The notes under the pieces: generated by a model
What the model was told of the DNA's origin: nothing
Seen by the model: the letters and a program-made list of their open reading frames with translations, nothing else
Databases searched by the model: none
NCBI GenBank assembly: GCA_900088475.1
Contig: FLMG01002866.1
Span: 1-46,820 of the forward strand
DNA length: 46,820 nucleotides
From: Hyphochytrium catenoides
Lineage: Eukaryota; Protista; Hyphochytriomycota
Direction of reading: 5' to 3'
Shown here: one piece after another, positions 10,501 to 46,800 of the stretch
How the letters are laid out: each line of letters starts with the position of its first letter
Numbering within the stretch: the stretch's first letter is position 1
Program-made: the position numbers and the translations under genes

Positions 10501-10605
10501 TCGAAGAAGAGAAGCCGCCTCGGTGACGACATTGTAGATGATACCCTCTTCTGTCGTAGCTCCATGCTGAGGGAGGGCAGGAAGGCCCAAAAGGTAAGAC
10601 GCTAA
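7522..10605 (+). CDS. hAT transposase with BED zinc finger (intron 9451-9515; frame break at A9 run 7886-7894, alternative start ATG 7967)
   Basis: BED finger SPIWNYF...CTKC...LSRHLETKH. DDE motifs FTIDFWTS, ITTDNASNM and PATSVPSERHFS; CxxH motif RCAAH; dimerization domain VLKWWQ...FPLLSKLAMRYL. Removing the 65-nt GT-AG intron restores the conserved DTR/WNST motif. Confidence 0.93.
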
Positions 10606-11494: not shown

Positions 11495-11568
11495 CCGGGG
11501 GGCCAGCAGTTCATAAATAGTTGGCTCCACAGCAAATCCAACGCAGCAAACAGCGGAACTGGGGAGTA

Positions 11569-13002
11569 ATGTCACAGAAGAGAAAGTGCTCAACGAGACG
11601 GGGGGCAACCGCGACGACGGAAGGGAAAAAAAAGCGAAAAGTTTACCCCTGTGCGATCCGCTCGTGCAAAAAGAATGTCTATCTGCAGTCGCTGTGCTTT
11701 TCCCACCTCAGAGAGTTTAAGAAGGAATGTATTGCATGTCAGGTACCAGGTTGTGGAGCGACTAAACGATCGAAGTCTCCTTTCTGTTGGGTACATGGCA
11801 AGCCGCCACCTCGAGCATCTCAAGAAGAAGAAGAAGACGACCATGTACCAAAGCAGCAGCCCAAAACTTCTCCAGAGCAAGTAGCAGAGCAGCCACTGCC
11901 AGCCTCCCAACAACAAGAGCAAGCACTACTAAAAAGTCAGCATCCACTAGCTTCTCAAGAGCAGACACCACCAGCTCTTCATAAAAATCAGCTCCCGCTT
12001 CAGCACTCATCAGATCTTCAGAAAGAGCGTTCAACAAATCAGCTAAGGGGTCAAGACGCACCATCAGCATACCGAGCACTTCATCATGAACCGCACGACG
12101 ATCGGCTCAACAACGGGCTTTCAGTGGAGGGGGAGAGGTGCTCCATACTAGGCTGTCCGAGCCGAGCACACTACAACTGCAAATTAGCCGGATGCGATGA
12201 TGGCAAGGTTAGCCGGCACGGCCTCTGCTCCCGTCATTGGCGAGAGAAACAGCGTACCGGGACACCCCTGGAACCATTAAGAGACCTTCGGCGGCCAAAT
12301 GCGAGGGAGTCCCCTTGTGAGTTGCCGGAATGTAGCAGGGCGCTGAGCTTCTTATATCAGAGGTATGAGCAGCTTAAAGAACAGCTGGAATGTGCGCTCA
12401 TGGACTGTGCTAGCTTGGAGGGTCAGCTTTTCCTTAAGGATACAGAGCTACAGACTCTTCGGACCCCAGAAGTGAGAAGGACTGATCCAGATGAGGGACC
12501 AAGTACCAGGACGAATTGTTATAGTGGTGGCGATAAACAAGATAATACTGGAGATGCCTCTCTTCCGGACGGTAACCCTAAGCAGGCTGCAAGATACAAA
12601 CGTCATTTGGCATTGGAGGTTCAGGCAGAGAGCGATCGGTTCGATTTGTCAGCTCAACGCCGTCATCGTCCTCTTTCTCGTCGCCTACCAACCCCACAGC
12701 ATTCTCCGACGTGTAGATCTATTGTTCCAATGCCTGCACCACTGGTAGACAGTGATAAAGAAGGACGTTCTTTTCTCCCATCTCCGTCCTCTCCTTCTTC
12801 TTGCCATACCCAACCACCGCTTCCTTCTTTTCCTCCTGCTGCTTCGTCTTTTACACATTCTCCTACCTCTCCTCGTCCAGAGAAGCTGACAAAGAGCAAT
12901 GGGTTCATGGGCAAAAGATCTAAGGATGAGAACAAGCCGAGTGATAAATATGAGAAGCGAGCTATCTCGTCGTTAGAGGCGGGGTTGGGGCTCATTATAT
13001 AA
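11569..13002 (+). CDS. Intronless 477-aa protein with C-x4-C-x8/9-C-x2-H zinc-finger repeats (WRKY19-like type), basic NLS, Q/P-rich linker and coiled coil
   Basis: Long uninterrupted ORF from ATG 11569 (MSQKRK). Motifs: GKKKRKV; CAIRSC..LCFSH; CQVPGC..FCWVH; CKLAGC..LCSRH; heptads LYQRYEQLKEQLECALMDCASLEGQL. Confidence 0.7.
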   Translation: MSQKRKCSTRRGATATTEGKKKRKVYPCAIRSCKKNVYLQSLCFSHLREFKKECIACQVPGCGATKRSKSPFCWVHGKPPPRASQEEEEDDHVPKQQPKTSPEQVAEQPLPASQQQEQALLKSQHPLASQEQTPPALHKNQLPLQHSSDLQKERSTNQLRGQDAPSAYRALHHEPHDDRLNNGLSVEGERCSILGCPSRAHYNCKLAGCDDGKVSRHGLCSRHWREKQRTGTPLEPLRDLRRPNARESPCELPECSRALSFLYQRYEQLKEQLECALMDCASLEGQLFLKDTELQTLRTPEVRRTDPDEGPSTRTNCYSGGDKQDNTGDASLPDGNPKQAARYKRHLALEVQAESDRFDLSAQRRHRPLSRRLPTPQHSPTCRSIVPMPAPLVDSDKEGRSFLPSPSSPSSCHTQPPLPSFPPAASSFTHSPTSPRPEKLTKSNGFMGKRSKDENKPSDKYEKRAISSLEAGLGLII

Positions 13003-13538
13003 CACAAATAAGGGTGTCAAAAGGACGGAAACCACCAGCAGTGTCCCTCTTTTACTTTTCTGTCTCACAACCCTTTGCTCTTTCTTCATTTTGGGGGTTA
13101 TCACTAGCTAGTACTGCTTCCAGAATACCATCATTATGGATAAGAGTTCTGATGACTACTTCCCAACCTCTATCCCATTACTTGCATGTCTCCAGTTGTG
13201 CTTTCTACCTCCGCTATCCATGCGCTGCCAATAATTAGTCTCAAGACCTCTTTCCCTACCTGCTTCTCTTTTATTTGTTGAGCAGAGTCTATCATAACTT
13301 ACCTGTCTTCTGTTGTGCTTCTATCTCCGCAATCCATGCGCTGCCAAGTCTTCTACCCTGTCTGCTGCTCTTTCAAATGTTGAATCCGTTCAGAAGCAGC
13401 TCTTGTCTGTGCCAATCCTGCTGGTCTCTTGGACTCTATCTCTTGATCCACACCACCAACTCTTATATATAGGGCATCGCTATTCCGGTTTACTTCTTCC
13501 TCCTACAAAGGTCGGGTTATTGCCTGATGGACGCAGAG
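12645..13538 (+). repeat. ~894-bp direct repeat, copy 2
   Basis: Colinear with 48-942. Confidence 0.95.
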
Positions 13539-18514: not shown

Positions 18515-19243
18515 CTATTGTTTGTGACCGCTTTTTGCAGGAGACTGACACTGGTGGAGAGAGAATTTCTCCCATGCCAGAGGTGCTTTACATCGTTGAC
18601 ACCTAACAGTCCTCTTATTGCATCGCTCAAGCATGTGAGAGCGCATATGCTGGAGTCTGACCAGAAGACCACATCGTACACAAGTGCTATAAGACCTTTG
18701 CGTGGGCTTGGCTTGGGCCTGTACTTGCGACTTTGTTGCTTCTGCCTTTGTTTTCTGTTGCTTCAATGGTTGTGCCATTGGTGGTTGCTTTGGTTGTGCT
18801 TTAGGCAACGGCTTCTTCTGTCCTGCTGATGACAAATTGGTACCCGTCGAGCTGCACAGAACGCGTATGGCGTCGTATAAACTGTTCTTCTTTCTCAGAT
18901 AGATATGGTAGATGACAGCTTCCATGGCCGTCGAGAGCTCTTTCCTTTGAAACCCAATGCCATTCGTAGGTGGCTTGAGAATGTGGTCTAGACGCAGCTT
19001 CCTTGCCCAGCTAGCAAGCACTTCATCTTTGATGTTCTCTTGGACAACATTATGTAGGATCTCCTTCGACCTGCGACAGTTTGGGTACGTAGCATAAGCA
19101 TACTCGGCGGCCTTGAGCTTCAAAAGCGCGTCACCGAAGAAGGCGTCGATATCGGCCTTCTCTCCACCGCCCGCGCTCTTCAAGACAATTGCCCCTCGAA
19201 TGTAGTCTGGTCCAACCCCGTAGAATTCAAGAAACCGCGCCAT
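18515..19243 (-). CDS. RNase III-domain protein (Mini-III-like active-site motifs) fused to C-terminal TRAF-type zinc fingers, 242 aa
   Basis: True ATG at 19243. DAFFGDALLKL resembles the RNase III signature; LHNVVQENIKDEVLASWARKLRLDHIL resembles the central helices; KELSTAMEAVIYHIYL resembles the second catalytic motif. The C-terminus CVRC-x11-H-x4-C..RTVRCQRC-x11-H-x-C has TRAF-finger spacing. Confidence 0.8.
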   Translation of the reverse strand: MARFLEFYGVGPDYIRGAIVLKSAGGGEKADIDAFFGDALLKLKAAEYAYATYPNCRRSKEILHNVVQENIKDEVLASWARKLRLDHILKPPTNGIGFQRKELSTAMEAVIYHIYLRKKNSLYDAIRVLCSSTGTNLSSAGQKKPLPKAQPKQPPMAQPLKQQKTKAEATKSQVQAQAKPTQRSYSTCVRCGLLVRLQHMRSHMLERCNKRTVRCQRCKAPLAWEKFSLHQCQSPAKSGHKQ

Positions 19244-21049
19244 TAATATTGGTGCAACGATCCGCCACTGCTATATCTTGAGAAGGCGCTTCTTCTTCGC
19301 GACTCAGTTGGCGATAGTAATGATCCTCCACAAATGGGCCCTCTGGTAGTTGTCGCCCAGCAGCAGCAGCAGCAACACCAAGCAGTAGTAGGGAACAGAA
19401 GGATCTCAACTCAGGCCTACTAACCACCTTCCTTACTTCCACCCAGCCTGGCGCCGCAACAAAGAGGGAACAACGCGCCGGCTGGACTGCTGGTGGTTCG
19501 GTACATTGTTGTGGGGTCTCTAACATTTCTCCAAAGCAGGCCCAAAGCTGGCCAAAACCCGGGACACGAGCAGCTGAGCTTACAAGGCATTGCGTTATAA
19601 TCATAGCTCACCGCATAGGGACTCTGTAAACTCACTCTTCTTCTCCTTTTAGTTCTTTTAGGTCGTACAAGGGCAGTACTCGTAGGAAGACAACAGCTGC
19701 ACCTGCCGTGGGTGGTGGTGGTGGTCAACGACCAAGAAAGGCAGTTGTTCCCATGCTAGCGGTGCTCATCAACCTTTCCTTCCCTAAGTCCCTTGACGAC
19801 GCCAAACAATCATCCATCATAAGGCCGACGATGGACCCACAGTGACACCGCGCTCACAAGAGTAATGCCTTTCCGGTTGGCTGCTGGTATAAGGCGGAGG
19901 CAGCAGCGGCGCGAGGATGAATGTTCAGTAGTAGCCACGGTGATGATGAACTGATGATGATGAGGGTGCGGGTGATGAAGAACCAAATAAACCAGCAAGC
20001 ACGGATCATCATCCGCCACGAGCAAAAGTAGAAAGCCCTTTCTCCTGCTGTTGCTGATAATCTTGGAGCCCAGCGGCAGCATTGCTCCTTTTGTCATCAT
20101 CGTTGTTAGTCACATCCACGAGTCATTTCTTCCTCCTTCTCCATCAACAAACCGCCGGGATCTCGGTGCTGCTATGAGTAACAACCATTTCTCCCAGGTC
20201 ATCTCGCCACGCATTCCTATCAGCCTCAGTGGTCCAGCAGTAGTAGAGAATAACGACGTGGATATATGGTGTATATCCCGCCGTGCGGGTAAACTGGGAG
20301 GACCTGCTCCTTCTTCTTCCACTGAGTGAGCTGGCGCTCGAAGCTAATCGTCTCCTCATACTTGCACCCCAACCAGCTTTCATGTGGCTTGTCTGCTCAA
20401 CTATTTGGTCTTATTTGCTATCACGTGATGATCAAAGGTAGGAAGGTTGTTGATCTATGTACACCTATGACCTGCTGCTTGCTCGGGCTATGATCTGTGG
20501 GTTGACTCTGCTTTCTCTTCTTTGTCCTGCGAGTGTGTTTGCCGCCAGAAAATTCTCATTCACAGATCTTAGAAACGCACTTGACCGTAGAATTCCTGCT
20601 GGCGGGAGAGCTCGCTGTGATCATCCCCAACCACCGTCATTACGAGGATGGTTTTGCTTGTCGAGGACAGAACGACCAGAGTTTGTGCCGAGAGAGAGTG
20701 CCTGTTCTTTCGCAGCACTATTTACTGTGAGGCTGCAGACCGCCACAATACCGGCGACACGAGCACTTCCCGAGGTGTAGCTAATGACGAAATGTTCTCG
20801 GAGGACACTAGGTTCACTCGATACCTTCTCTATCTGGCTTTTATAGATGGCTGTATGGGCGGTGAGGCATCCATTGAGGTTGCATGGACACCGCCCGCCG
20901 TTGGGGAGCTCAACCTATGAGTAAGGAAGAGGACGATTTATTGAAAGGATTTGCACCAGGTCTCTGGCAGCTAAGCCACGGTTTCCAAACGAATATCCTG
21001 TTCCGTCAATGGCCTTACAAAGGAACCCTTCGCGAACGAGAGCTCATCT

Positions 21050-24000
21050 CTACGCTTTAGTTTGCTGTTGTGCGACCGCGGTCGGCAGCTTGCTAACTCT
21101 TTTGTACTTTGAGAGGTCTAAGTGCTCTAGCCTGAAGGTCCCAATGACTTTTTCGGGAAGCTCTCCATCTGTTTGTGCCTCTATCATCCACGCAATGTCG
21201 ATAACCAGCTGTTTGATAGCGCCACGGACTAGCCCTACTACTTGATTAGCAATCCTGCATGGCAAACCAGAGTGGCAAGGTCAGGGTATCAAGCTTAAGG
21301 CTTTGGAAAAGAATAGGAGATTATGTGAAGAACGTCATAGCACATAAAATTGTCATCAAGCAGCTACAATGCGGTAGCAGTGTTGACGTCACGCAAGTAT
21401 GAACTCGTCTGGCCGAGAGAAAGTGAGAAAGGTTCTTGGGTCCAAATATTGCGGAAAGAACTTTCGAGCAGCAGAAAGGCTAGGGTGGGCTCTGTGGTAC
21501 CTATCCGAGGCAATGTCAAGGTCAACCTCAAAGTAATTCTCTCCTCGGAAGTATGGAATCCGTAATCCCTTGTTGCCAATGATCGCTGGCTTGGCTCCGA
21601 CGGCCTGTTTGATAATAAACGGACCTACCACCACGTTGGGGATGAGCTTGAATCGGTTGTTCCGAAAGGTGTCGTCTCCATCGATGAAGTCCAAGAAGAG
21701 CTCTGAGAAAGGTGACTGGGAACACAGAGGACTCCATTAATTCAACATCAGAGCAAGGCCTGTCCTATGCCATCATGATACAGAGCTTGAGGTGAGAAGA
21801 ATATAGGAAATTGATACAATGAATTAGCTGCCTGGGACGCTGGCAATGGAAAGCGAAGTCAAGGGAACAGATTGTATCATTTGCGCGGAGCTCTCATCTA
21901 CTCTAAGCGAGGGTGATACCTTACCTTCTGCTCCATAAACTTAGGGTTCTTGGGGTGGTAATAGGCCACAAGACTTAGATTCTCCGGACAGGGGACGATG
22001 ATGTTGACAACAAAGGTATATGGAGCGTCACTGGCTGTCTCATTGAGCTGGCTGACGACATTGTCAGGGCGACCAGCCACATTGTATCTGTCTTGTGGAT
22101 CTTCAAAGGACAAGAGGTCACAGCCAACAAGGTGGAAGGCGCTGCTGCCCGCGGATACCTATTTGAAGAAGCACGTATAAGGAACACGGCGGTTGGAATA
22201 GCGTACTCTCTGTCTTTGGGCGTGCTGAGAAAGGTTAGGCCGTCAACTCTTATGCTATGAGCCAGGAAGATAGGCCTCAGAATGTGCTAGATGTCAAGAC
22301 TTGAGAAAAGGAAAGACAGTTATGTATTCGAGGACACAGGATCCCAGGATGACCTTCTTCTTGTCTTGAAGGTATGTGGGCCCCCGCACGTTAAACTTGC
22401 TCGCATCAAACTCTTTGTAAAACTGTTCTGGGCAGGATGTCGGAAGTCTCCTCGCTTCTCCGTACCGAGGCGTAGGGAGGTGGAGATGTCAGAGGAAAGA
22501 GAGGGTTCGGTGTGAAGTTAGCTGCAAGAGTCCTCATTCCCTCATAGATTGCGTAAGAGAACAAACGGACCAAGTGATATTAAGCTACAACTAGGTCGTA
22601 CACTCTCGCTCGCCCTTACCAGTGGTTTCTTCCTTGTTGTCCTCTTTCTCCTTGCCATGTGAAGGGGTGGTTGGCGTAGTCGACGAGGTTACAGTCAAGG
22701 TAGGTTCGATGAAGTCCATAGGGTAGAACTCGTCTCGAACGCCCACCACTGACCAGAGAAGCGGAAGTGCAAAGTCCACGCTTCGTCCATATTTTAGCCA
22801 CCAGGAGGCACCACCGCTGGGGTCATACCTGTAGCCAGTAGAGTTTAGAAGGGTTTGACAGTGGCAGAGGTACCGGCGATGGCTCATATATGCAACATTT
22901 CACGGCAGAAGCAATCTCTAAGGCCAATCAAATGCTAGAGCACAACCTCACTCGAGAGATGAAGACAAAGAGAAAGGACTTAAGCTAGAGAAGAGTTTAG
23001 CTCAACCACACGTCCAAACAATTTCTATTTTGAGCACTTCCACGCCAGAAGAAATTAACATTGACCAGACCCATCTTGACTTCCCTAACTCATTACTATG
23101 AAGACGCCAGTAGAAGCATGGGATTGACCCGGCGTACCTCATGACGTAAGTAAGAAGAGATGCACTCGCATTGCTACCCTTCGAATGGGCGACTTCAGGC
23201 CGTAGCGGAGCAATGATCAAAGCTCCTGCGTCCAACTTCGCGCGCACCACACCGGGGCGTGGCCTGCACTCAGGGTGTTCTGTACTCTGGTAGAGAACTA
23301 TATAGCTACCGTCCTACAAACGCAGTTTCCGTGTGAGCAAGAATATAGACCAAGATGGTGGGAAGAGATCCTAGTGGCAAGTGCACAAGAGCATAATAAG
23401 GAGAAAGTCACGTTCGTTCTCTCGTCGCCTCAGTGAGCTCGCGTAAGGTCAAGACCCAGCTTTAGCTATCAATCTACGACCTACCTCCTCTACTCTCCAA
23501 TACCTAATAAGACATAAATCTCGTGGACGCGTCCAAAACGCCCAAATCCAAGTTGGCCGAAGAACAATATGGAGAACGTCTGAATGGTCATCCAGCTTCT
23601 GGATCACTTTGACGTGAGAAGCTGCAGACAACCATCGCTGCCACTGTCCACATAGCAGCAAGGCAACCGTCAGATGTCCTAGTCTTGTGACATTGATTTA
23701 CCCAGAACTTCAAGTCCACTGAAGTAGAACCTAAGCCGCTCTCCGCCAATTATAGCGCAAACAGTCCACCACCGCTCCATCGATATGCCTAACTTCCGTT
23801 CGGCCCTTCTTCGTCGATTGATTGCTGACTTCTTACCTTGTTTGGGTCCATGATTAGGTTGAAAATGGCCTGAGGGCTTGCCCTAACAATGTCCTGAACT
23901 TTAAGGGATGGGATGTACGGCGAGCCTGGGCGAGATGCGACCTGCAATATTATCACGGGCCGTACCCCTTTAGCTAGGAGGGGTAACATGCACTTCCAGG

Positions 24001-26532
24001 AACACGAAAGACCTGACACGGCGCTGTCAACTCAGTATCACGTCAACCAAATGCCGCCTTCAATTAACTTAACTCAAGTGAAGCCATGAAGGAGTCGATA
24101 TGCTCACCAGCACTTACTCTCATATAAAAGCAACCCGCTCCCAATGTGACACTGGCCACAACTGAGAACATTCCAGACATCCCCAGATATGGTAAGAGAC
24201 TAGAGGCGAAAAGGGAGAGAATTACAGCGAGCATCCAGTCTTGATTATTCCTGTTTGCCATATCGGTATCGTACGCCGCTGCACCATAATCGAGGATGAA
24301 TGTGAGCGGTCGTTCAAGGGAAAGAAAGGTTCTGGGATGAGATGGTATTGCTCAACGGACCAAATAGAGTTTCCCTAGGAGTAGGTATGGCCTTAGTTTG
24401 AAAAGAAGTATCTGACCGTAAGTGTCCAAGTGGCCTCTGATCTCTTCCATAACGCGTAGGCCTGCAGCTATCGTTAGAATTCTCCAATGTGTCTGTTGGC
24501 TATCTCCCTGCTCGAAAAGAGCCGAAGAGGTAGGGACTTTTAGAACCCCTGAGCAAAGGTTAGGGAACAGAGTGCTTGTCACAGAGCTACCTCATGGTTG
24601 GCTGTATCCTCTTGACCAACAGATCTCCCAGAACGGTATCCAGCACGAAGAATGCCTCTGCCGTAGTCCTCCTTGAGCACTGCCTCCATGGTTGCAGGAA
24701 CCGTACCTAACTGACTCTTACGAAAGAGGCCCTGATGCAATACGAAGCAGCGAGGTCATAAGGTGTGGATACTGAAAAGCGCTGTAGCTCCCGTCAGCGT
24801 TGGTTCCAAAAGGCCCAGCAGCTAAAAAGATAACAATAGCCATACTAGCGCCACCGAAGGAAGACCCCGCATGCGAGGATGGGGTATCCAACCCTAAAGG
24901 AAGACCCACGACGACAGGAGAACGGTAGTCGAAGGGAGCACCTTTGCCTTATATTCAACTTGCCGAAACTTCGACTGCACACAGTGAAGGGGAATGGTGG
25001 TTAAGGCTCTGCAAAGGCTAGATAGAGGCCCTAGAATTTAACACCCAGCCTGAAGTCAGGAGAAAGGACAGTAGAACTGAAGTGGGCACTGCTTGTGCTC
25101 GTAATGCAATTGCAAATTAGATGCATATGCTAAAAGTAGATTTCTTACTCTCTGTATCGCTTGTGCTAAGCAATTCCTCCATTCTTGCGCACTCTCCCTT
25201 GACTTTGCCCCGAGCTCGACATAGCGCTCTCTGAGCGTAAGCGTGAAAGTGGTGCCATGGGGAAGTTCCAACGGGAACTTTATCTTGAATACCCAGAAGG
25301 TCTCTACATAAGATTGATGAGATGCAAAGTCCATGTCAGCAATCTCTAAAATAGCCTCAGATATGGATGATGAAAGCAGATACAAAAGGTCGCTTCCTAG
25401 CTGTACCGATATTGGGACTAAGAAGGGACCTGAAGTGATGAGACTGCATTAAAGAGGGAAAATGCAAAGACTCCTTGAGGAGACAGCCGTAAGGAGAGAT
25501 CCGAGATCGTAAGTTCTGCAAGGCTGCATGGCTTTGGAGTGAAGAGCAAAAAGAGCGATTTTACTTGAAAGTAGATCTCTGCAGCCGAGTGAGTTTGAAA
25601 GATAGAAGTGCAGTTGCAAGCAGATGACCTTTGTTCCAATCATGGGTCTCCACGACATCGCTCACAGTGCAATCCGGGGTCAAAGTATAGGTGTTGCGAG
25701 GCGTCTAGATGAGGCCATGAGGTCAGATGCACAAGTATGGGGCTCATCAGACATCACGCAAAACCAGCAAGGACAAGAGATGAGGCGCGAGCCACCCGCT
25801 ATGAGAATAAAGAAAGACAGCGACTGAATAGCAAGATGCATGATGGAATAGAAGACTGTTGGCTGGCTACAGTGTGAAGGGCTGAGGAGCTGGACATACC
25901 GGATCGCCACGCTTGTTGAACAGACACAGCTTAGTGTCTTCTAGGATAAAGTAGCGTTCATCTGAGGGCGGCGCACAGTCAGGAGGTGGTATCGAGAATC
26001 AAACTCTAGCAAGTATGGAGAATATAGGGAACAGATAGAGAGCAGGAAGACCGCCTGTCTGTTTTGGGAAGGCAATGCTGGGCGACCATGGTAAGCAGCC
26101 ACTTAGCGGATGACTTGCGTACGGAAGTACTTTCTCAGAGCCAGTCATTAGACGTACTGAAGATTATATTAAGATGGTCCCGTTTGCGCAGCCGGTTCCT
26201 CTTCACCAGCCAGCCTTCCATGGTGACAAAACCCCCAAGCGGTTGACTGCACAAATTAACCCTAAGTGACAAGATGGTCCGGCTGCCTCAAGTTTGCCTT
26301 GACTTACCGTTCAAACCTCCAGGCTTGAGGCAGGGCCTCTGCAAGGAGTTCTGTCTCCTTTTTGTCTGCAAGCTCGAGTGCTTTCTGCGAAGACCAGGAC
26401 GGCGGAGTCAGAGGTCTGGCTGTCAGATGATCCCAGGACTGAGTGACCGATAGCGTGACAGGCGGTCGATAGGATCACCTCCTTATACCGATAGCGCCGA
26501 TAGATTATCATCGCAAGCCCAAGTGCCAGCAT
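21050..26532 (-). CDS. EDR2-like PH-START-DUF1336 lipid-binding protein (multi-exon)
   Basis: Spliced exons give PH (MEGWLVKR...NERYFILED...SAQEWRNCLAQAI) and START (DIVRASPQAIFNLIMD/WQRW...RPRDLCLIRYWR). They also give DUF1336 (FNVRGPTYLQDKKK, DGDDTFRNNRFKLIP, YFRGENYFEVDLDI, IEAQTDGELPEKVIGTFRL). Stop at 21050; first exons 26532-26479 and 26384-26308 inferred from GT-AG joins. Confidence 0.92.
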
Positions 26533-27358
26533 ATGTGTACAGCACTGTACTCATCTAACATCTACAACTCTTGTCGATGACAATGTGACGCTTCACCTGC
26601 CTCATTTATTTACAGTCATACGCACTTTATAAACAGCGGCAGCAGTGGTCGCTAACGGCTTGGTATGAGGGAGGGTTTGTGCTGACCGTTAGCGGTAGGC
26701 TAGGAAGTGTAACCACCACCCTCTCTCCTTCCCTTTCGATGGGCCATGGTCTGCATGTTCCAGTGTCGGGTCCATCTCTCTGGCATTCTGTCTCGTTCCT
26801 ATATTGCTTTATCCTCACACTTTCCCTTTATATCTCTCTGGCTCTTTCACGCGGATGGCGTCTCTTACAATGCTCTCTGTCTTTGGTTTTCGTCTCTTTA
26901 TCAACTGCCAGTTCGCGGAACATCTGGGTCGGCGCACTTGTCTCGACCTCGAACTGGGTAAAAAGCGCTGGAAGACGGCCTTCTTGATCTTGGTCTCTTG
27001 CTCTCTTTGCCGACGTTATCTCAAAGAAACAAGACCTCTTACCAGCGACCTCAAGCCATTGATCTTCGTCTCAAATTGCTTTGCCAAAAGCTTCGAAGAT
27101 TCGTAACGCCGAGACACATAATAAATGACTGTAGAGGAGTAAGGAGTCGACTGAGCTACGTGTCACCTTTGCGTCCTCCGCCCTTCGCCTGGTTTCGCAG
27201 CCGTGCGACCGGAGAAGAAGATCAGGGATGTCGACCAAAGCAATAGGAAGCACAGCGAAGCTCTCGGTAATCGCCCTACTATCCTGCTATCCCATTGAGA
27301 CATTTCTCGGTCAAATCCTGCGCCATGACCATGCCATTACATTCCACATCCATTTGAC

Positions 27359-27407
27359 NNNNNNNNNNNNNNNNNNNNNNNNNNNNNNNNNNNNNNNNNN
27401 NNNNNNN
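27359..27407. other. Assembly gap (49 N)
   Basis: Run of N. Confidence 1.
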
Positions 27408-27409
27408 TA

Positions 27410-29898
27410 ATGAACTCAACAATGAAGGCGGCGAAGCGTGCCGAGCTGATGGCCCTTAAAAACAAGGAAGATGAGAAAGGAGACCGGCGCTTGCTTCTTC
27501 AGCGAGCCCTTGTTGAGAAGCTCACAGGGAAATATGCCCGAGGAAGTGAAGAGGCGGAACGCGTCATCAAGGCTACGGTGCGTGATGTCATGGGGAAGAA
27601 GGTGAAGCTGACAGAAGACGATATCAGAGGGCTGGAGAAGACCGTGAAAGAGCTCTGCGCCACCTTCCCCGCCGTCAACAGACCTAGGGTAAGACAACAT
27701 GCTTGTTCACGTGCTTTCAACTTTCTTATCAGAGGCATCAAGAAGTCATACGCCTGTGTTTATGCTGCCAACATAGTTCTTTCTATCGTTCTAAGCTTGG
27801 CTACCAGTTCCATGGCTCGTGTGGCAACAGAGCAAAGTCTTGTCTTACTCCTACGTGCTCCTAGTCCCAAAGCAGCACTAAGGACTCGATGAAGGAAGAT
27901 ACGGCACGTGCAGTAGAGGCAGTGGATAGCCCACACAGGCTTAACTCTGGGAGCCCGTCAGGTCCGAGAGAAGCACCAAAGGCGTCTGAATGTCTTTACT
28001 GATTAGTCGGTCTGTGTGCTTTTCTGTATGCAGCAACTTCTCCCATCGGCAAGGTGGACGAGTGGACTCTGATCAATGAGTATAACAGGTACATTGCTAA
28101 CCGCTCTTGCAGCCACATAAATTGCCCCTTCCCTTAACTAGCGCTCCCCATCATTCTCCTCGGTCGATCGTCAGTCTCCAGCACGAGCAGGAACTGTCAG
28201 CCAAGAAGAAGAAGGCAAAAGACGACAAGCTAGTCCAGCGGATGATCCTGGACAAGCAGCGGCAGGAAAAGCTGGATAAGCAAAGGAAGCAGAAGAGGGA
28301 CGAGTTGGAGTACTATAAGCGCACATGTAAGGATCAATGCCTTTTTGCCATTCATTGCAACTACGGGCTCCGTTTTTCTGGTCTTTTCTGTTTTTTTCTG
28401 GACCATGTGGAAATTTTTTTTTCTGTGCCTTGACTGGCCTCCTGCTGTCTCCTACCCTTTCCACTACGCTCTTGTTCTGCAGTGGACGACGTCGAACGGT
28501 GGAAGGCAGAAGAGCAGAAGAAGAAGATCGACCTTAAGGATCAGATCAAAGAAATCAAGCAGGATCGCGAAAGACAAATTAAGGAGATCCAAGTGCTGAG
28601 AGACAGGATAAAACAAGCCAAGCTGAAGGATGAGCTAGCACTGCTTGAACGCTGTGACAACGTAAGAGGAGCACTGCTTTAGGATCAAGATGAATTTCCT
28701 GAGTTAGCGCCCACCACTCTCGCTGACCTTCGTCCTCACATTTGACTGGTGTAGCTCATCAAGAAAGAAGTGGAAGCGATCGTTGAGAAGAGGAAGGAGG
28801 AAAAGGAGAGGATGCTGGTGGTACAACTGGAGAATAAGAAAAATGAAGTGATCCGAGAGGAAAGACGGAAAAAGGAAGCCGATGAAGACATCAGACTGAT
28901 GCAGGAATATGCAGCCAAGTTGGACAAGGTCGGAGACTCTGCTTGATTTAACCTTAGCTAGGACCTGTAAGGGTCGCGATAGCCTCTCACATGCCGCCTC
29001 GTTGTTCTGGATGATCATCACAGGAAGAAGCCGACCGAGAGTACGCCTTGAAAGCCAAGTTGCGCACCCAGGAAGATTTCTCTGCTCTGACTGCCAAGAT
29101 GTTGGAGAAGAAGCGACAGAAGGAGCTAGAGTTTGAAAGACAAGTGGAGGTCTGTGCAAAGTTAAAGGAAGAGGCGGACCAGCTCCGGGAAAAGGTACGG
29201 CAACAGTGACAAACTGCCTTCTCTCTGTCTGACAGAACTAGTGGAGATTTTTGCCGTCCGCACCGACCGCTTGTACGTGCCACGGTGTATTAGTCAGTAT
29301 CTCTGACGCGCTGCCAATATCTTTATTTTCCATCGCGGCGTTTGTTCCTCATGCAGAGAGACAAAGCGAAAATCAAGGAAGATACCATAGCTTGCAAGGT
29401 CACCCTGAAAGATCAACAAGCTCAGAAGGAGAAGACCCAGAAGGAGCAGGTGAGATGGCCATGATAGTAGTACCGAGGGTTTATACATGCGGCTGCTGAT
29501 CTGATATCTTACATAATTGTTGGTATCTACAGGAGCTGCTTGATGCAGAGTATGCCAGACGCTTCAGAGAAGAAGGAGAAAAAGCTCAGAAAGACCAAAT
29601 ATTGAATAAGAGGTGCGCACTGCTGGCTCTGTCGGTTGTCATCCAGTTCTTAACTCTCTCTCTTTTTTAAAGGCATCTGCAAGATAAAGCCAAAGCCCAT
29701 CAGAAGATGCTTTTGGAGCAGATGAAAGCCAAGGCTCAATTGGAAGAGTCGGCTGCCCAGTCCATGGACGACAAGGAGAGGAAGCTCAATAAGAAGGCAC
29801 TCGAAAAGATTGAGTCACCAGAAGTACTGGCAGAGATCTCAAGGCGGCTCTCTCCTCTAAAGACCAAGGCGAACCATCATAGCCGCCCACTCTGGTGA
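27410..29898 (+). CDS. Multi-exon E/K/Q/R-rich coiled-coil protein, trichohyalin-plectin-homology-like (probable cilium/basal-body protein)
   Basis: GT-AG-bounded exons (first 27410-27688) encode VDEWTLINEYN, QRMILDKQRQEK, WKAEEQKKK, LMQEYAAKLDK and LLEQMKAK, ending SRPLW*. The start is adjacent to the gap, so the 5' end is uncertain. Product is inferred from composition. Confidence 0.75.
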
Positions 29899-37800: not shown

Positions 37801-40800
37801 TGCTCTTGTTTATATTCCTTGGCGGTCTTGGTTGTGAAGTACGCCCATCAGCTATCGTACTTCCAGAAAGAAGAGGAAAAGTACAAGCTGACAGCCACAG
37901 GTAAGTCAAGGAAACCATCTGTTTCCTCTTTATGGCTTTTCCCACATGTGCGTCTTTCTTGGGCTTCCTGATTGCCCTCAGGGCCTGACCCTTTCTACCT
38001 TCAACAGCGAGGGTCGATGTGCTGTGCCAGGTCCTGCAATCCAAACTAATATCCTCTCCATTAATCGACAGGGCAATGGCTGGGACTTAAAGTTGTGCCT
38101 ATGACACCTCCCGCTCTGCTGAGGTATCTCAGTGGCCAGATTCTACTTCTTCTAGTCATAGCTGCACAGAGAAAGTAAGTGTCCGGGCGATACCCCGTAA
38201 AATGCTTCCTTCGCCGTTAGAGCACATCGTTGCTTGCTTGTTTGTCAGCACTGCGCACTGCGTTCGAACATGGCAGACTTCCGTTTTCTGTGCACTGACA
38301 CCTCCATTTTGTCTAAGCGTCGATAGCTGGTGGGAGGATGCCGTCGTAGCTGCGGACTCCATGCAGCTGAGGAGAGCTCTACGGCTCGAAACGACACGCC
38401 AGCTTCTTAGCAGTAAAGACAAAGGGCAGCTAGACCCAACGGTGGCATCTGCTTCTGCTCCATTGAGATCTGCCTCGTTATCAGAAGTGGAGATGGGAAG
38501 GAGTGAGAGAAAGGATGAGAAGAGCCATCAGCCTGAAGGTACGCAGTCTTCTAAGACTCGAACATTCTGACACAGCAGCAATAGAGTCTTAGCCTTCGCT
38601 TTTCAAAATGTGGTCTTTCCGCAGTGCTTCCACACTTGCGAGCCTGGTTCTTCTCTTCTGAGCTTTATTCATTCTTCGTTGCTGCCTACACGTATGTCCT
38701 TTGTTCTATGCCGTATAGGTTATCTGTCGAATGGCTTTACCGATCTCTTACATCCCTCGTCGGTTTTCATCCGCCACTCGCTTCTATCTTTCGTTCTGCT
38801 ATTCTTCGCTTTCTCAACAGAACGGATTCGGTATCTTCACACCCTGAGTAGCTCTGATGCTGCCGTGGAGTCCAACACGCGGCCCCGATCCTTCTCTCTC
38901 CAGTTGCTGGACTGCTACGACGCAGCTATTCTCTACCTCTTTCGTTACTCTGTATCAAACTCTCTCTTTCTTTTCCATATCTGCCTCCTTCTTGCGGCCC
39001 TGACACATGGAAACGTCTTCTCTCTTCTCTACTTCTCTATACTCTTGCTGGCTTCATTTAAGCCTCAGCAATGGCTAGAGGAAAACACGATCAAAGTCAA
39101 GTTGGTCCTTATTGTTTCTATACTTCTCCAGTACTTCCCTTTCTTGGGGTTTCCCCCGTTCATAGAGGGCTGGAGTCCGCTTCCTTGGGCCGACGAGCTA
39201 GCTCCGGAATACCTCTACTGGCTTGGCATCGGTAACTGCTTCCTTTCTCGCTGTTCTGCCGTACATGACCTTGGACCGCTATTACCGAGCTAATCGGCCT
39301 AACGTTCCGCTTCGGAGTTCTTGCTCTTCTTCAGCTTAATCTTTTGTCGACGGCCTGCGTTATGTCAAGAACATCGTGCTAAAGCTCTGCCGCCCTCCTG
39401 CTAAAGTCGCTCTCTCACCCATCGTTGCCATGGCTTCTTTCTTCTACTCTAGGTGGCAGGGACTTCGGTAGGCCTGTGCTTCTTTTAACCGATGTTATGG
39501 CGTTGATAAGTTTAGGACTGATCGCTCGAGGTCTGGATGCTCGGAGGCACATTCAGATATTAGGTACACCTAATCTTTCTTCACCTCAAAGGGTTCCCGG
39601 CAGAATTCTGGACTTATTTTTCTGTTCACGTTCTGACCAATCTTAGCGACAAACCACTCGAGAGCTTCTTCCTACGCGATTAATAGTTGCCTCTTCTCCC
39701 ACCTATAAACCAGCTCAGGAGGTGTGGCAGGAGCTAATGACAGCTTCAACGCAAGATGACAGCGGGCAAGCTGGTAGAGTACAAGCGCCAAATCCAGATA
39801 TAACAAAGACATCAGCGTTGCCTATCGCTTCGAAAGCAGTGGGCTTTAGTACGGGAAAGCAGAGTCGGAAATTAAAGACGAATCAGTCTCTCAAGACAAT
39901 AAAGGAGGAAACCTCATCTGCAGGTAAGAGCCTTCCGTGTAGCTGTGTCATCGTGCTTCTATTCTGCCATTCATGGTGCCTTGGTGATCCGTAGTACTCT
40001 GTCCGTCTTAACTCTGGCCCCTCTGAAGCTTTACAATTTGGCAGTTCTGCTTCTCGTGTCTCTCACTATGGCACAATATTCTAGTTAATAGGTTGAGCGC
40101 TACGATTTCGGCATTGCCAGGCGTCCATTCTTCAATTGTGCTTTTATCTTCTCTTGGAACTGACCGCTATTTCAACTGCACTTGCATACAGAGCCTGAGC
40201 TAGAGGGTCCAACGAAAATACCTGCGGTGCCCGGTGATCTTGAGGATTTCACGATGCCCAACCACCGTAGCCTGCGCGATTGGGTTACCTTTCTCATCTA
40301 CTCATATTCCTCCTTCGTTCTCCGTCTTCTCGCGTTCCTCATTGCCACAACGGGAATTGATCTAATCTCAATCGGCTTCTTGGTCCTTGCGATTTTAATG
40401 GCCCAGCATCGAGAGCCACCGACAAAGGTTTGCCTTGTATATGGCCCAATCTTGCCTCTTCTCATTCGCCCTTGTCACGGAAACCTCGCGTGTTGTAGCT
40501 GTTTCTTCTAGATGTGCTTGGCTGAGCTAGCCCGTGTCACCGGCTACTTCTCTTGTCGATCTTTCTTCTTGAATGAATAGCTATTCATTCTCTCTGCTTG
40601 GTTGCTTCTGCTAACTCTCTTGCTTTGTCTCTCTATTTTCCAGACAAAAGGCAGGAGGATGTTGCGGAGTAAGCTCTTCCGCGCGCTGAAGTATCTGAAC
40701 TACGCCGACTTTGGCTTGCTCTTTCTTTTCCAGATCCCCTTCTTCCCCTACTATCCCTGCTCGGGTTCTTCCGCTCTATCGCCTTACTCGACATGTCTTT

Positions 40801-43800
40801 CTTATAACTCTATCATCGGACTGGCAAAGATTCCGGTCTCCTACCCTGGAGGTAAGATAACGTGTCTTTCCTTATCCGAGACGCTTGCACTTCCATATAT
40901 CTCTTTTTTAGCCTGTTCATAGTTCTCTCACTAAAGTTCCAGCTTCAAAAGTCTACCTTCCTCTCGACGTTGGCGATGCTCATTCTCAGCTAATTCTTGA
41001 CTTCACGGCCACAGCCCCAGTGTATGATACGACTTCGCGCTGGGCCTCGTTCCTCTTGTTCTGCGCCGTTCTAATCCAGACTGAAATATATAAGAGTAAG
41101 AGCGAGCTCTAGGATCGTCCGCCTAAACCCCTTACTCACCCTAGAGTCGCGTCTTTCTGCTTTCTCTTTCCAAAAGACTCACTTCAGCATTCCTCCGAGT
41201 CATCACTCCCCTTACAAGGTCCCTGTCTAAGCTTTCTTTTGGCCTAGGCGAGTGCTTCGTCTACATTACCGCTTATCGCAAACGCCAGGTTGATCGTCGC
41301 TCATACTATCGAGCCCAGATCGACAGAGAGCTGGCGCTACAGAGGGTCTGCTCCTGGGCTGACATGTTTCGAGAGAGAAACCACACGCTACACAGATTGC
41401 AGGACATCATTCACACGACGGCCATGAGCACTACGGAGCTTCTCGACGTAGCCACCGGTAAGTGACCTAGATTGCATTAGAAATGGCTCCCTAAGCCCTT
41501 ATGAGTGCTAGAGTGAAGCATCAGAACGTAGATGTCGTCGTTGTGGATCAGGTGAATGCAGAAGGAGAGGAAGAAAGAGGCGAGAATCAAATGACTCGAG
41601 AGATCATATACTTCCTCTTCGTTTTGAATATCATAGTAAGCGAGCGCGCGAGCCAGTGTCCCCCACTCCATGCTAAGTGTTAGGTCTGCTATCTCTGGAG
41701 GCATGCTCAATTCTCTGCTCCGTGCTACCATGTAGGGCTGATGAAGTCATTGCCGCCACTTGCATCAAGAAGGCTTCAGTGTGTGAGGGCCACGCCCAAC
41801 AGTGTTGACCTGGAATGGGAATCTCCGCCAGCTCTACGTTCTAAAGAAGAAGTAGAAGGCCCGCCTCGGATCCTTGCCTACCGAATTCTTCAGCAGCTCT
41901 ATCCCTCTTTCAACCTTATGGGAGACTTCAACTATGTCTTCGAGGTAGGCTGCAGCTTCCACCGGGCTTACGCTTTTACAAAATCACTATAGGTCCATGG
42001 AATATCTGTGCATCATAAGCAAAAGCGACCCTAAGGCTTACTTCTGGAATTTGTTTTGGTCTAGGTATCGGGTGATTGCACCAGCTTCACGGTCACAGGG
42101 CTACTGCCTGACAGACAATATGCCTTCAAAGTGTGTGCCACAAATAGTAATGGAGAGGTATGGTCTTAGCTCGCCTTATGCGCCCTCTTCAAGTGTTTCT
42201 TGCAGTTCTTAGTATTGCTGCCCGTCCATTTTAGGGTCCTCCCAGCGCTATGGTCCTGGGTCGTACACTTCCAATAGAGTTTGGTCATCAGTGTACAGCG
42301 GGCTGGCTCGGAGTCATTGACTCGCACACCTCGAAAGCCAAAGACAAGCTTCTCAGGCTCCTCAAAAGTACTCACCAAGAGGTCTGTATCGCGCTGCCTT
42401 GTGTCTGATGCCTCCTTTTCCTGTCAGTCTCCGCTGTCTGCTTGGACCAGCAGAAGTAGAAGTACTACACGTGCATAGAATGGTGGGGGATAAGACATAG
42501 CTAATCTCTTGGGGTCTCTTCTAGGGGACAACCCTTGCAAGGTTTGCAGTGATGGATCGAGAAGCTCTTCGCCTTTATAAAGACGAGCATAAAGCTGTTC
42601 GTCATCGGTTGCAAGGCAGACGAACTAGATGTGAGACGTTACGCCTGCAGAGCATATCGGTGAGCGAGAGAAGAGACCTAGTTCGTGACGTCCGGCTAAG
42701 AAGCAATGTACTCTTTCTTTTGAAGCTGTCCAGAGTGCACTCTAGGCGGTATTTCTTTTGAGTTATGTGCTACTGAGGTGGCATGCCCATTTTAGTTTGC
42801 TCGTCTCTTCTATGTCAGGGGGAAAACCCTGCCAAGCATCGTCTATTCCCTAGTTCCTTCTCGCCTTTTGGTGTCGGGGTTGTTACTCATGGGCGTGACT
42901 AACCTAACCTGCCACAGAGAGTGACCCTGGATTGGTGGGAGAGACAAATTGATGAAAGTCCTCCAGTACTTCCCTCCTTCCAGCTCGACGTTATTACGGA
43001 CGATGGTGTTGCCAGGACCTACAGCTTGCGGCCAGGTGAGGTTTCAGCCTTCGTTTACCATGTAGCGCCTTGTGCTTGTTAGATCCAAGAAGGCAGTCCA
43101 AGCCTAACGCCCATTTGTATTCTCGCTACACTCATCCTCATCCTTCCCCTTCGCCTTTCGTTTGACAGAAACAGAGTCTGACACAGAGAAGTGGACGAAT
43201 GCCTTTCAAGAGTTCCTACCCCCTAATGTCTTCAACGCGTCCTCGCCATTGCCCTCAGAAGGGAAGGCCCTTGCAAAGGTACGGCCCCTGTCGCTGCTGT
43301 TGGAAAGATTTTTAGTTTTAGATATCCATCATCGCGCAAACTGCAGATAAAAAAGTAAGAGACGTGCAAAGGGACAGAGGACTACAATGAAGTACATAGA
43401 GACAGCCAGGAACGTCAGCAAACGATTCAGAGATAGCTAGCAGTCATTTTGGCTGAGAGACAATCTAGAACGTCAGTGGAAGTGCCTGATCACTGCTTTT
43501 GCACAGGGACCAAAACATCCGGAAAGCTCTCTCCTTTCCTTTGGCCGTCTTAGTAGCCAGGAGAACTCCAACGTCAAGCTAGATCTTGAGAAATCTAGGA
43601 GAAAGGCACTAGGGGTGCAGGCCTACCAAGCCATATGGGTAATGGAGTCTTTATTATGCTTCTCAACCCACAAAATTCCCTGTCTCGCGTAACGGGCAAT
43701 AACTTGCTACAATGAGGCCATAGGGACAGTCAAGCCGATGTTACCGACTAACTCTTCGCCTCAGTCCCTGCAGAATGTCATTTTCCGTAAGCGCAGTCCG

Positions 43801-46800
43801 TCACCCGACGAAGTGGTCTCGTTTCCTTGGTCTAAGCTCCTGGAGTTAACGATAAACACTGTGCGGAGTCTCACTGCGGAGCTCGTGTATCTTATCGTCA
43901 CCTTTACCTTTTGCGCACAGGTGAGACATCTATTTCGTTACATAGGTCTGCAGCGGCTATTTACCCTCTCTTATTGCTTCACCTGCAGGGGGATGTCATG
44001 TCTCTTGTGCCGCTAGTGTACAGTTACGCCTATCTCATGCTAGAGAACCCGCATCCCAGTCGAAATCAGTGGACTATTCTGTCTCGCTACGTACGCCAGA
44101 GCTTCTTGATGAGCCGTCTTTCTGTCACCTCCCCTCCGTTTTCATGCTTGTTGCTAACCATGTGTATCTTGTGTGCTATAAAGGTCCGTCTATTAACTTT
44201 CTTTCTCTCTAATAGACGGTGGCGGTAATGGCAGTGAAGTATCTCTTCCAGCTCCCATTCTTTTGTCAGAGACTTACGGCCGATGGACTCTATGTCTACC
44301 CGAGGTAAGCATATCCAAGGGACCCTAGGAACTTAATGTCTTCGCCATGCTCTTGTTCGGCATTAGCTGCAGCGTATAGTGGGCTAACGCTCTCGATCTT
44401 TTGGCTCCCACAACATTTGGCGGTTCCTGATATGCCTGGCTCAGCGTTGCACCGTATTGCGAAGAGCAGACGGCGCAGCAGACTGGCGAATGGGGCTTAG
44501 CACCTCTGCAGCCCATGATCATTCTTGGAATATACAAGTTTGATGGAACTTTGACCTCCACCTCTTCGCCGTTGGGTGGAGTCATGGGACATTTCTTCAC
44601 ATTGATTGCCCTTGTGGCTCATAGTAGGGAGCTACGAGCGAGAGGGCTGTGGGAGGAACTCCCCAAGGAGCAAGAAATTGAGCTAAGGCGGAAGGCGGAG
44701 CAGGAGATAGATGCGGATATAGCTCGAATCAACCCCTCCTGCCGACGTGAGAAGGATGATGAAGGTAAAGAACTTGATAGTCCCAGGGAAAGACAAGCAT
44801 GGATGGACAACGTTGGGCAAGGAGGAGGAAGAGATGCCGTCCATACAGTGGAAGAGATCGAGAACTCCAAGCGTTCAGGGCTCCCTGAATGGCTGTCCCA
44901 CCTGGTACGACCCACGCCTTAATGAGTTCTAGCTCCTTCTTTCCATAGCGCAAGCAATACCCTTGTAATGGAAGTGAGACCGTCCTAATATCCCAGATAT
45001 CCTCGCCCCTACCCTATACAGTCCGTTATATAAAACCATGATGGTCTCCACCGCGCTTTCTACGGCGATTCGTTATTCATGAAAGTTCAGCCACGCCTAG
45101 CATCTCACATCTCTCTCCTGTCAGCTTCCCTCGACATTGTACCGCTACTACGAGAGGATCAATCCTGCAATACCGGCAGGGTGGTATCGGGATCTACGCG
45201 TCGCAGTGGTAGGCCTGAAGCCCGGCCGATCCTTCAGAAGCTCAGGCTTTGGGCTACACGTAGCCATTGTGCTCTTCACCTTAGTCTTTCAGCGATCGTT
45301 CTCCTCCAGCCCATCCACGACGTCGTCCCTAGCACTGCTCACCCGAGGTGTCCAGCTGACAGTGTTCTCAACAGCAGCAGTGGAACTTATAACTCTGCAG
45401 GTTGTTCTTCATAAATTATGTTGCTCTATCGATAGATCCTAGCCGATGCTTCTGCACATCTGGTCTAAGCATGAGCTAGGAATCGTCCCAAACTGTCCTG
45501 GAATGTAGCGCCTCAATGCCTAGTGTCTTCTGCTTCTCTTCTTGATGCGATCAGTCAAGTCAACGTTGTGTCTTCTGAAGTCGCAAGCTTTTGACTGTGT
45601 ACACCAGCCTTCAGTTTGCCCATCTAACGCTCCTTCATTGCCCCAGATAACATTTCTCTTGCTGGACGAAGTGGCCTATCTCCGATCCAGCTTGAGGCTC
45701 AAGATTTTGTTATTTTACCTCTACGTTATCACCTTGCATGCTGTCTTCCTTCTGGGCTTAGGGTCGCAAGTTGGCCTGTTCACTGCACGACCCTCCCTCG
45801 TGTTTATCTACTGTTTACATGCGATGTACATGGCGGTCACGGCATTGCAGGTATTGGCAATCTAGGCATAGTAACCTCACGGGTGCTCTTCTATTTCTCG
45901 TTCAACTCGTTTTCTCGTGCTCGTCTCTAGGCCCTTTTGAGCTGTCCCTCTCTTCTCCGTAGGTGACGTGGTACTAACAGACTCCTTGCGTTGTCATACG
46001 CCCTTGTTTGTTCCATATCACACATTGTTCTTTCCCACCTTCCCATCAGTAAGCTGTCGCCTTCTTACTCGCCTTGCCTCCCAGATCAGATATGGATTTC
46101 CAGCGTTCCAGGGCTTCTCCGAGCTACCCCGGGAACAGGGTTACGGATCCTTCGCCTACCTGAGGCACTACTGCTTCATGCTGCTTCCCTTTGCTTTCGA
46201 GCTTAAGAGTATTATTGGTACGAGAATATTGTGGACATCCACTACAAGGCTTGCATACGTTGGCTTCCCGTGGTCTTGACTGACGCTGAACCGTCAGGTT
46301 GGGCCTGTGCCACTACCTCGATGCCCCGGGAGTTATATTTCTTTTTGGAGGAGGTAAAGACATCCTGATTCTCTCCGCCCTTCTCCGATAACGTTAGGTT
46401 GTTCTTCTTGTTAGCCGAGCACCTTCTAGCTGCAAGGGCTCTGCTGCTATGCTTCTCTTAGCTTGTCTTTCTGTCTGGTCTCCTTTAGCACTTCCTGATT
46501 ATGTATGGCGTCTCGCGTTCCCAAAGAAGACGTCTGACTATAGCTTGAGGCAAAGTATTAGGCTTACATAGTACTTCGGGTTTTCTTTGCAGGTGTACAG
46601 CTCTATGTACCTGACTAAGTGTCAGATGGTGGCGAGGATGCGTGATAGCGCCATCCAAGGAAAGCGAAGACAAGCGTTGAGAGGCAGATGCGTACAAGGT
46701 ATGTGGAGGAGGAGCCAACTAGGGATCTAGGCTACCTGCTCGGTCCTAGCACCTGTCTAGCCATGAGGAAGCACCAGAGAAGAAGCCTACTTCATCTTCC

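Follow-up and report, generated by a model that had tools for sequence, protein, structure and literature searches.

Gene structure and position of the cassette

The window analyzed here is the whole 46,820-nucleotide (nt) stretch of contig FLMG01002866.1 from Hyphochytrium catenoides (GenBank assembly GCA_900088475.1). Its right-hand end carries, on the forward strand, part of a gene for a Piezo channel, in which six exons encode a fibronectin type III (FN3) domain followed by a putative domain of the pleckstrin homology (PH) type. We refer to these six exons as the cassette. We re-read the sequence from 41100 to 43600, translated it in all frames and recovered all six exons on the + strand with the peptides quoted in an initial annotation of this DNA, which had proposed six in-frame exons bounded by GT-AG introns. 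Each exon is indeed bounded by AG and GT and can be joined to its neighbors, but the end of exon 5, placed at 43036, was off by 1 nt: the exon ends at 43035 and its GT occupies 43036-37. Exon 6, previously left open-ended, spans 43169-43278 and is followed by a GT at 43279-80. At the other end, the codon that opens in the last base of the preceding exon, 41248-41457, is completed by the first 2 nt of exon 1 (G+GG, Gly), and exon 5 leaves 1 nt that is finished by exon 6 (G+AA, Glu), giving the reading ...LRPETESD..., or ...RPETESDTEKW.... The cassette thus measures 812 nt (~270 residues), and its introns, all GT-AG, are 77-278 nt long.

We built a 19-exon model by hand from the sequence and checked the exons downstream of the cassette one at a time against Pfam; domain searches of the cassette itself were likewise run on single exons. 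The model (40206-46698, +) comprises 1,101 codons without a stop and 18 introns of 68-334 nt, all of them GT-AG, and the cassette lies in its middle, in phase on both sides. The gene continues past the end of the window (46820), which falls inside the anchor region, and the pore module lies beyond it.

The exons after the cassette identify the gene. Profile PF23188 (THU_Piezo1) was collinear with exons of the eighth transmembrane helical unit (THU), its positions 21-52 falling on 43989-44090 and its positions 80-121 on 44446-44904 (the latter a weak match, E 0.26). Likewise, PF24874 (Piezo_THU9_anchor) covered 45647-45850 with positions 56-123 (E 3.4e-6, 27.1 bits) and 46085-46258 with positions 124-166 (16.1 bits), an exact continuation from the preceding exon. 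Because the profile coordinates run on across the predicted junctions, both the junctions and the Piezo identity are well supported. The single THU matches stay under the Pfam cut-off because the exons are short, and with single-exon Piezo scores of only 16-27 bits the sequence is very divergent. The anchor motif reads PFAFELK, a variant of PF..ELR with Lys in place of Arg, and the DW that should follow is not conserved. In the Atlas feature search, the stretch 38694-39236 farther upstream grouped with Piezo THU clusters (score 0.96); it was 28-31% identical to metagenomic and red-algal Piezos.

The initial annotation had placed the cassette between a beam-like helix and the last transmembrane (TM) repeats, and this placement held: a helix exon precedes it, and the THU8, THU9 and anchor exons follow it. 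AlphaFold2 folded the preceding exon (41250-41456) as one helix spanning residues 2-68 of 69, that is, 67 residues, with a mean predicted local distance difference test (pLDDT) score of 95.2. In this model, the segment 41248-41457 matches the Piezo beam. The order of parts would accordingly be THU7, beam, FN3-PH, a 44-residue linker, THU8, an acidic loop, THU9 and anchor, where the placement relative to THU7 rests on a weak PF15917 match (E 0.3) and on motifs. None of the cassette exons contains a hydrophobic segment. In the established Piezo topology, each four-helix unit begins and ends in the cytosol, and the cassette should therefore be cytoplasmic.

Table 1. Exons and other features of the Piezo gene in the window, with the basis of each assignment
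Feature	Position	Strand	Basis or remark
Upstream Piezo THU, stop-free stretch, approximate limits	38694..39236	+	Atlas feature search: Piezo THU / Piezo_TM1-24 clusters
THU7 exon, two hydrophobic helices, start uncertain	40206..40427	+	weak PF15917 Piezo_TM25-28 match; in frame
THU7 exon	40644..40851	+	KYL..FQIPFF and IGLAK motifs, typical Piezo repeat, by eye
THU7 last helix exon	40943..41095	+	alternative acceptors 40937, 40952; all three in phase
Beam-like helix exon	41248..41457	+	AlphaFold2 single helix; donor GTAAGT at 41458; directly after last THU7 helix
Cassette exon 1, FN3 strands A to C' (SVDLEW, AYRI)	41736..41944	+	in phase with beam exon
Cassette exon 2, FN3 strands E-F	42065..42157	+	Pfam fn3 PF00041
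Cassette exon 3, FN3 G strand (GPPS...), short linker, putative PH beta1 (AGWLGVI) and basic beta1-beta2 loop	42235..42381	+	motifs by eye
Cassette exon 4, putative PH beta2-beta4 (ARFAVM, LRLYKD)	42525..42659	+	motifs; net charge +6
Cassette exon 5, putative PH beta5-beta7 (FQLDVIT, RTYSLRP)	42918..43035	+	motifs; in frame
Cassette exon 6, putative PH C-terminal helix with conserved Trp (ETESDTEKWTNAFQ) and short tail	43169..43278	+	motif; in frame
Linker exon, 44 aa, no TM segment	43507..43638	+	phase 0 to phase 0
Pre-THU8 helix and first THU8 helix	43765..43920	+	in frame; alternative acceptor 43774
THU8 exon	43989..44090	+	PF23188 THU_Piezo1, E 7.6e-4
THU8 exon (KYLFQLPFF)	44216..44304	+	43-52% identity to metagenomic Piezos; in frame
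THU8 last helix and acidic THU8-THU9 loop	44445..44904	+	weak PF23188 match; tblastn matches to Piezos
THU9 first half	45125..45400	+	in frame in 19-exon model
THU9 second half	45647..45850	+	PF24874 Piezo_THU9_anchor
Anchor exon with PFAFELK, 3' limit uncertain	46085..46258	+	PF24874, continues from previous exon
Further anchor exon (VYSSMYLTKC...)	46593..46698	+	motif by eye; in frame

The FN3 domain and the probable PH domain

The FN3 domain noted in the initial annotation was recovered by exon 2 alone, whose 31 residues matched the Pfam fn3 profile (PF00041) at positions 44-74 of 84 with an E value of 1.3e-5 and 25.7 bits, against a cut-off of 25. Exon 1 alone had no Pfam match, and its AlphaFold2 model was of low confidence (mean pLDDT 63.5). 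This exon carries the SVDLEW and AYRI motifs, which would correspond to the conserved Trp of strand B and Tyr of strand C of FN3. Four of its five matches in the PDB were titin or fibronectin FN3 domains, with the A-B-C strands in register around SVDLEW, at nonsignificant E values of 0.5-9. Exon 3 then starts with GPPS..., as expected for the FN3 G strand. At the level of sequence, we regard the presence of an FN3 domain in the cassette as established.

The remainder of the cassette resembles a PH domain. Over ~120 residues, we found by eye the motifs AGWLGVI, ARFAVM, LRLYKD, TLRLQSIS, FQLDVIT and RTYSLRP, followed by ETESDTEKWTNAFQ. Compared by eye with the family consensus, this corresponds to the PH-like pattern of seven strands and then an amphipathic helix with a near-invariant Trp, with GWL in beta1; the motifs cited for the assignment were GWL, RFAV..LRLYKD and RTYSLRPETESDTEKW. 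The order and spacing of these motifs argue, with good confidence, for a PH fold in the second domain. FN3 and PH meet within exon 3, and because both domains join inside one exon we consider FN3-PH to be a single cassette rather than two shuffled exons.

One result speaks against this assignment. When exons 3-6 were searched singly, they had no match in Pfam, in the PDB or in the Atlas feature search, so that of the PH domain proposed initially the peptides and their order were confirmed but a match at the exon level was not obtained. Of the three basic residues in the classical high-affinity phosphoinositide signature K-Xn-(K/R)-X-R, the domain retains by eye just one, namely the Arg before the beta2 aromatic: beta1 (GWLGV) has no Lys, and beta2 (LARF) provides only the last Arg. 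This signature in beta1/beta2 marks the lipid-specific subset of PH domains and not the PH fold itself. The beta1-beta2 and beta3-beta4 loops are strongly basic, with a net charge of +6 for exon 4. Because only one of the three signature residues is kept, electrostatic binding to a membrane or protein would be expected rather than a specific phosphoinositide switch.

A second gene of the window bears on how well single exons reveal such domains. At ~20600-25500 (-), a multi-exon gene has exons matching START (E 1.2e-4) and EDR2_C/DUF1336 (E 1.7e-21 and 8.4e-11), the lipid-transfer architecture of plant EDR2. Its segment 25059-25448 resembles by eye the C-terminal half of an EDR2-like PH domain, yet it has no Pfam match. 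Since this apparent PH half also escapes Pfam, single exons appear to detect PH domains poorly.

One gene or two, and the surroundings of the locus

We scored the splice sites with a crude position weight matrix trained on the other twelve introns, ranking them among the 158 GTs and 220 acceptor candidates present in 41.3-43.9 kb. Both donors of the introns that bridge cassette and Piezo exons ranked high, 41458 (GTAAGT) being 4th and 43279 being 7th of the 158 GTs, and the acceptor at 43506 was 13th of 220 with 6.2 bits. The bridging introns measure 278 and 228 nt, an ordinary size for the Piezo gene model, and a separate promoter and terminator would hardly fit into them. Judging by the gene model, the cassette and the Piezo TM exons are thus probably carried on one transcript.

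Several features of the cassette's edges are unfavorable to this view. The acceptor at 41735 is weak (49th of 220), exon 1 contains an ATG (41741) that is in frame and lies three residues ahead of the FN3 start, and read-through past exon 6 meets a stop near 43348, so that a free-standing FN3-PH open reading frame (ORF) is formally possible. All three would suit a nested gene, in which the six exons form an independent FN3-PH gene on the same strand inside a Piezo intron of 2.0-2.3 kb and the Piezo mRNA splices from 41457 to an acceptor near 43460-43730. Acceptors that skip the cassette and restore the frame do exist (43460, 43469, 43724, 43730 and 43814), but their scores of -1.5 to -12.7 bits compare poorly with the 6.2 bits of 43506. 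We had also considered that the Piezo frame might strictly need the cassette; this was rejected, since in-frame skipping acceptors, though poor, are present. An independent gene would leave unexplained the canonical, correctly phased sites at both cassette ends, its promoter and terminator would need to fit flanks of 278 and ~160-228 nt, and the resulting intron of 2 kb would be six times the length of the longest other intron in the model. We therefore consider a nested gene improbable.

The cassette could instead be optional or differently bounded, either through alternative splicing or because details of the model differ (additional micro-exons in 41458-41735, different acceptors). A stop-free stretch of 62 codons (41495-41680, +) lies in the intron that precedes exon 1, as do GTs resembling strong donors at 41684 and 41732; these may represent an extra small exon or an alternative junction. 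The in-phase acceptors 40937/40943/40952 and 43765/43774 are ambiguous. Skipping the cassette as a block, however, would cause a frameshift (812 nt, remainder 2). An uninterrupted ORF, domain-complete in its FN3 and PH motifs, is already obtained with the simple model, and together these points make this alternative rather improbable. Finally, the cassette might be a decaying exonized insertion or an assembly artifact without function. Nothing specific favors such a relic beyond the draft nature of the window, in which transposon copies and, near 27.4 kb, a run of N occur. Six exons totaling 812 nt without stops or frameshifts, an FN3 match at the Pfam threshold, the intact FN3 Trp and Tyr and PH C-terminal Trp, and the absence of any repeat or gap within 40-46.8 kb all argue against it, and we regard it as extremely unlikely. 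Overall, the locus is probably one intron-rich Piezo gene with a folded FN3-PH-type cassette of ~270 residues in the cytoplasmic loop between the beam (after THU7) and THU8.

The rest of the window contains several unrelated features. Two adjacent ORFs at 7883-10605 (+) are parts of a hAT transposase, with a BED zinc finger (E 8.6e-5), a hAT-like RNase-H fold and a hAT dimerization domain (E 3e-19), probably split by a stop or an intron. A direct repeat of ~0.9 kb (48-942 and 12645-13538, +; 95-97% identical, 12.6 kb apart) brackets these ORFs together with a 493-aa ORF without a Pfam match (11521-13002), and could stem from a segmental duplication or form the two ends of a large mobile element. 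An intronless ORF of 242 aa at 18515-19243 (-) encodes a Ribonuclease III domain (E 2e-8) and, toward its C terminus, matches a zinc finger (CEP104_ZnF, E 5e-4). The run of N at ~27390-27440 is an assembly gap and gives runs of X in the translations of 27135-27407 and 27329-27889. Long CT/GA microsatellite tracts occur at ~1.6-2.0 kb, 3.9-4.5 kb and 14-15 kb.

Distribution, possible role and comparison with known Piezos

For comparison, a metagenome collection was scanned with the degenerate pattern PF..ELR...DW..T.T.L. This recovered 120 loci, all of them true Piezos, 14 of which have long intron-free ORFs. Seven ORFs were scanned with Pfam over their whole length and ten over the 750 residues preceding THU8, corresponding to 11 distinct ORFs. 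No PH domain was found in these 11 intron-free ORFs, and fn3 was found only once and below threshold (L107, 20.9 bits). This is in agreement with the earlier claim that animal and land-plant Piezos have neither domain in the post-beam loop, which holds among the animal-like and plant-like ORFs scanned. The fn3 match of L107:6214-14091 (-) lies at ORF residues 1199-1231, ~370 residues before THU8, and no PH-like sequence follows it; it may be a chance match in low-complexity sequence or the remnant of an FN3 at the same site. L107 is GC-rich and red-alga-like: a word search with it returned only six red-algal-type Piezos (P0001-P0006, including Pyropia), and the precomputed Pfam list gave no fn3 or PH for any of these six. 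By eye, the post-beam loops of L021, L077 and L107 are of low complexity.

The Piezo exons and the cassette exons behaved differently in these searches. The THU8/THU9 exons were 26-52% identical to metagenomic and red-algal Piezos. When the cassette exons were compared one by one with the metagenomic Piezo loci by tblastn, only five weak, scattered matches were obtained (E 0.03-0.9), none of them for exons 1, 2 and 6, and no cassette was seen in any of the 120 loci. A full-library phmmer search with the anchor stretch gave no match, and word searches with the FN3 exon-1 stretch and with a 240-aa THU stretch found nothing. The best matches to the THU8 exons of the window (40-52% identity) were two compost-metagenome contigs of GC ~0.4, L017:852-4493 and L014:5183-8884 (+). 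The Piezos that they encode are compact and nearly free of introns, have only ~1,200 residues ahead of the anchor and lack the cassette. Three other loci (L117, L023 and L047) have vertebrate-type Piezo1/2 anchor motifs and are perhaps human or other vertebrate contamination; they were included in the bulk ORF and tblastn passes and left out of later analysis.

In the literature searched, including a family-wide analysis of Piezo repeats (PMC11283329), we found no description of a Piezo with an FN3 or PH domain. The supplement of a review on oomycete calcium signaling lists Piezos of P. infestans (XP_002909616.1, 2774 aa) and S. diclina (XP_008608165.1, 2824 aa), and neither the review nor its supplement mentions PH or fibronectin domains for the oomycete proteins listed (PMC4820453). 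The window gene is thus a variant of a known channel family with a layout undescribed in the literature found. Were oomycetes to share the cassette, it would represent a lineage-specific channel feature in important plant and fish pathogens.

What might such a cassette do? In mammalian Piezo1, the loop after the beam is occupied by the latch and clasp, and the activity of mammalian Piezos depends on phosphoinositides and on the cytoskeleton. In the animal and other protist Piezos that we compared, part of the beam-THU8 loop is disordered. The window gene, in our reading, would encode its cassette in six constitutive exons, with FN3 fused to the PH-type domain within one exon, and the product could serve as a rigid "clasp" built into the channel beneath the proximal blade. 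In that arrangement, the basic PH loops would rest on the acidic inner leaflet and FN3 would serve as a spacer or docking surface, so that the distal end of the lever might be coupled to the local membrane charge or to a partner protein. By leaflet contact or partner docking, PH and FN3 would then load or stabilize the outer end of the lever. Taken on its own, we give this clasp role somewhat less than an even chance. A specific, high-affinity phosphoinositide switch is not predicted, and the hard-wired lipid or small-GTPase sensor with distinct gating that was initially suggested is speculation.

A wider hypothesis is that the FN3-PH cassette is a clade-wide invention of hyphochytrids and oomycetes, with Piezo gating set by anionic lipids of the inner leaflet or by a partner, either cytoskeletal or a small GTPase, that docks where the beam has its outer end. 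We consider this unlikely; if true, these channels would represent a natural hybrid of force-from-lipid and tethered gating in place of the mammalian latch/clasp. More generally, the FN3-PH layout could tie the sensing of force to lipids of the membrane or to partner proteins. It bears on two questions, namely how force passes from the Piezo beam and the following loop to the pore, and in what way the channel is tuned by phosphoinositides and the cytoskeleton. If a folded module that binds lipids or partners does follow the beam, such a Piezo would provide a ready-made construct for testing ideas on force transfer.

The other protist, algal and plant Piezos from metagenomes (L021, L077, L084, L108, L019, L078, L038, L076, L009 and L098) and the red-algal ones (L107 and P0001-P0006) share the THU8/THU9/anchor core with the window gene but, save for the sub-threshold hit in L107, are without an fn3 or PH Pfam match; in the animal-like ORF L098, the post-beam region has only Piezo_TM25-28. 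Oomycete genes are intron-poor, whereas the window gene has at least 18 introns in 6.5 kb. Outside the family, NOMPC/TRPN is a mechanosensitive channel with a built-in ankyrin-repeat tether. By analogy only, it too is a force-gated channel in which a folded cytosolic module of the same chain couples to something outside the bilayer core; family and fold are unrelated, and a tether role of the cassette is conjecture.

The closest structural reference remains mammalian PIEZO1/PIEZO2, for which cryo-electron microscopy has revealed nine four-helix THUs, a beam, the latch/clasp, an anchor and a pore module. The window gene follows the same plan: a repeat, a long helix matching the beam, a cytosolic loop, two further repeats separated by a long charged loop, and the anchor with its PF..EL(R/K) motif, and the Pfam Piezo models are collinear on its exons. 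However, while the post-beam loop of mammalian Piezos is largely disordered, with a small latch/clasp, that of the window gene holds an FN3 domain and a PH-like domain.

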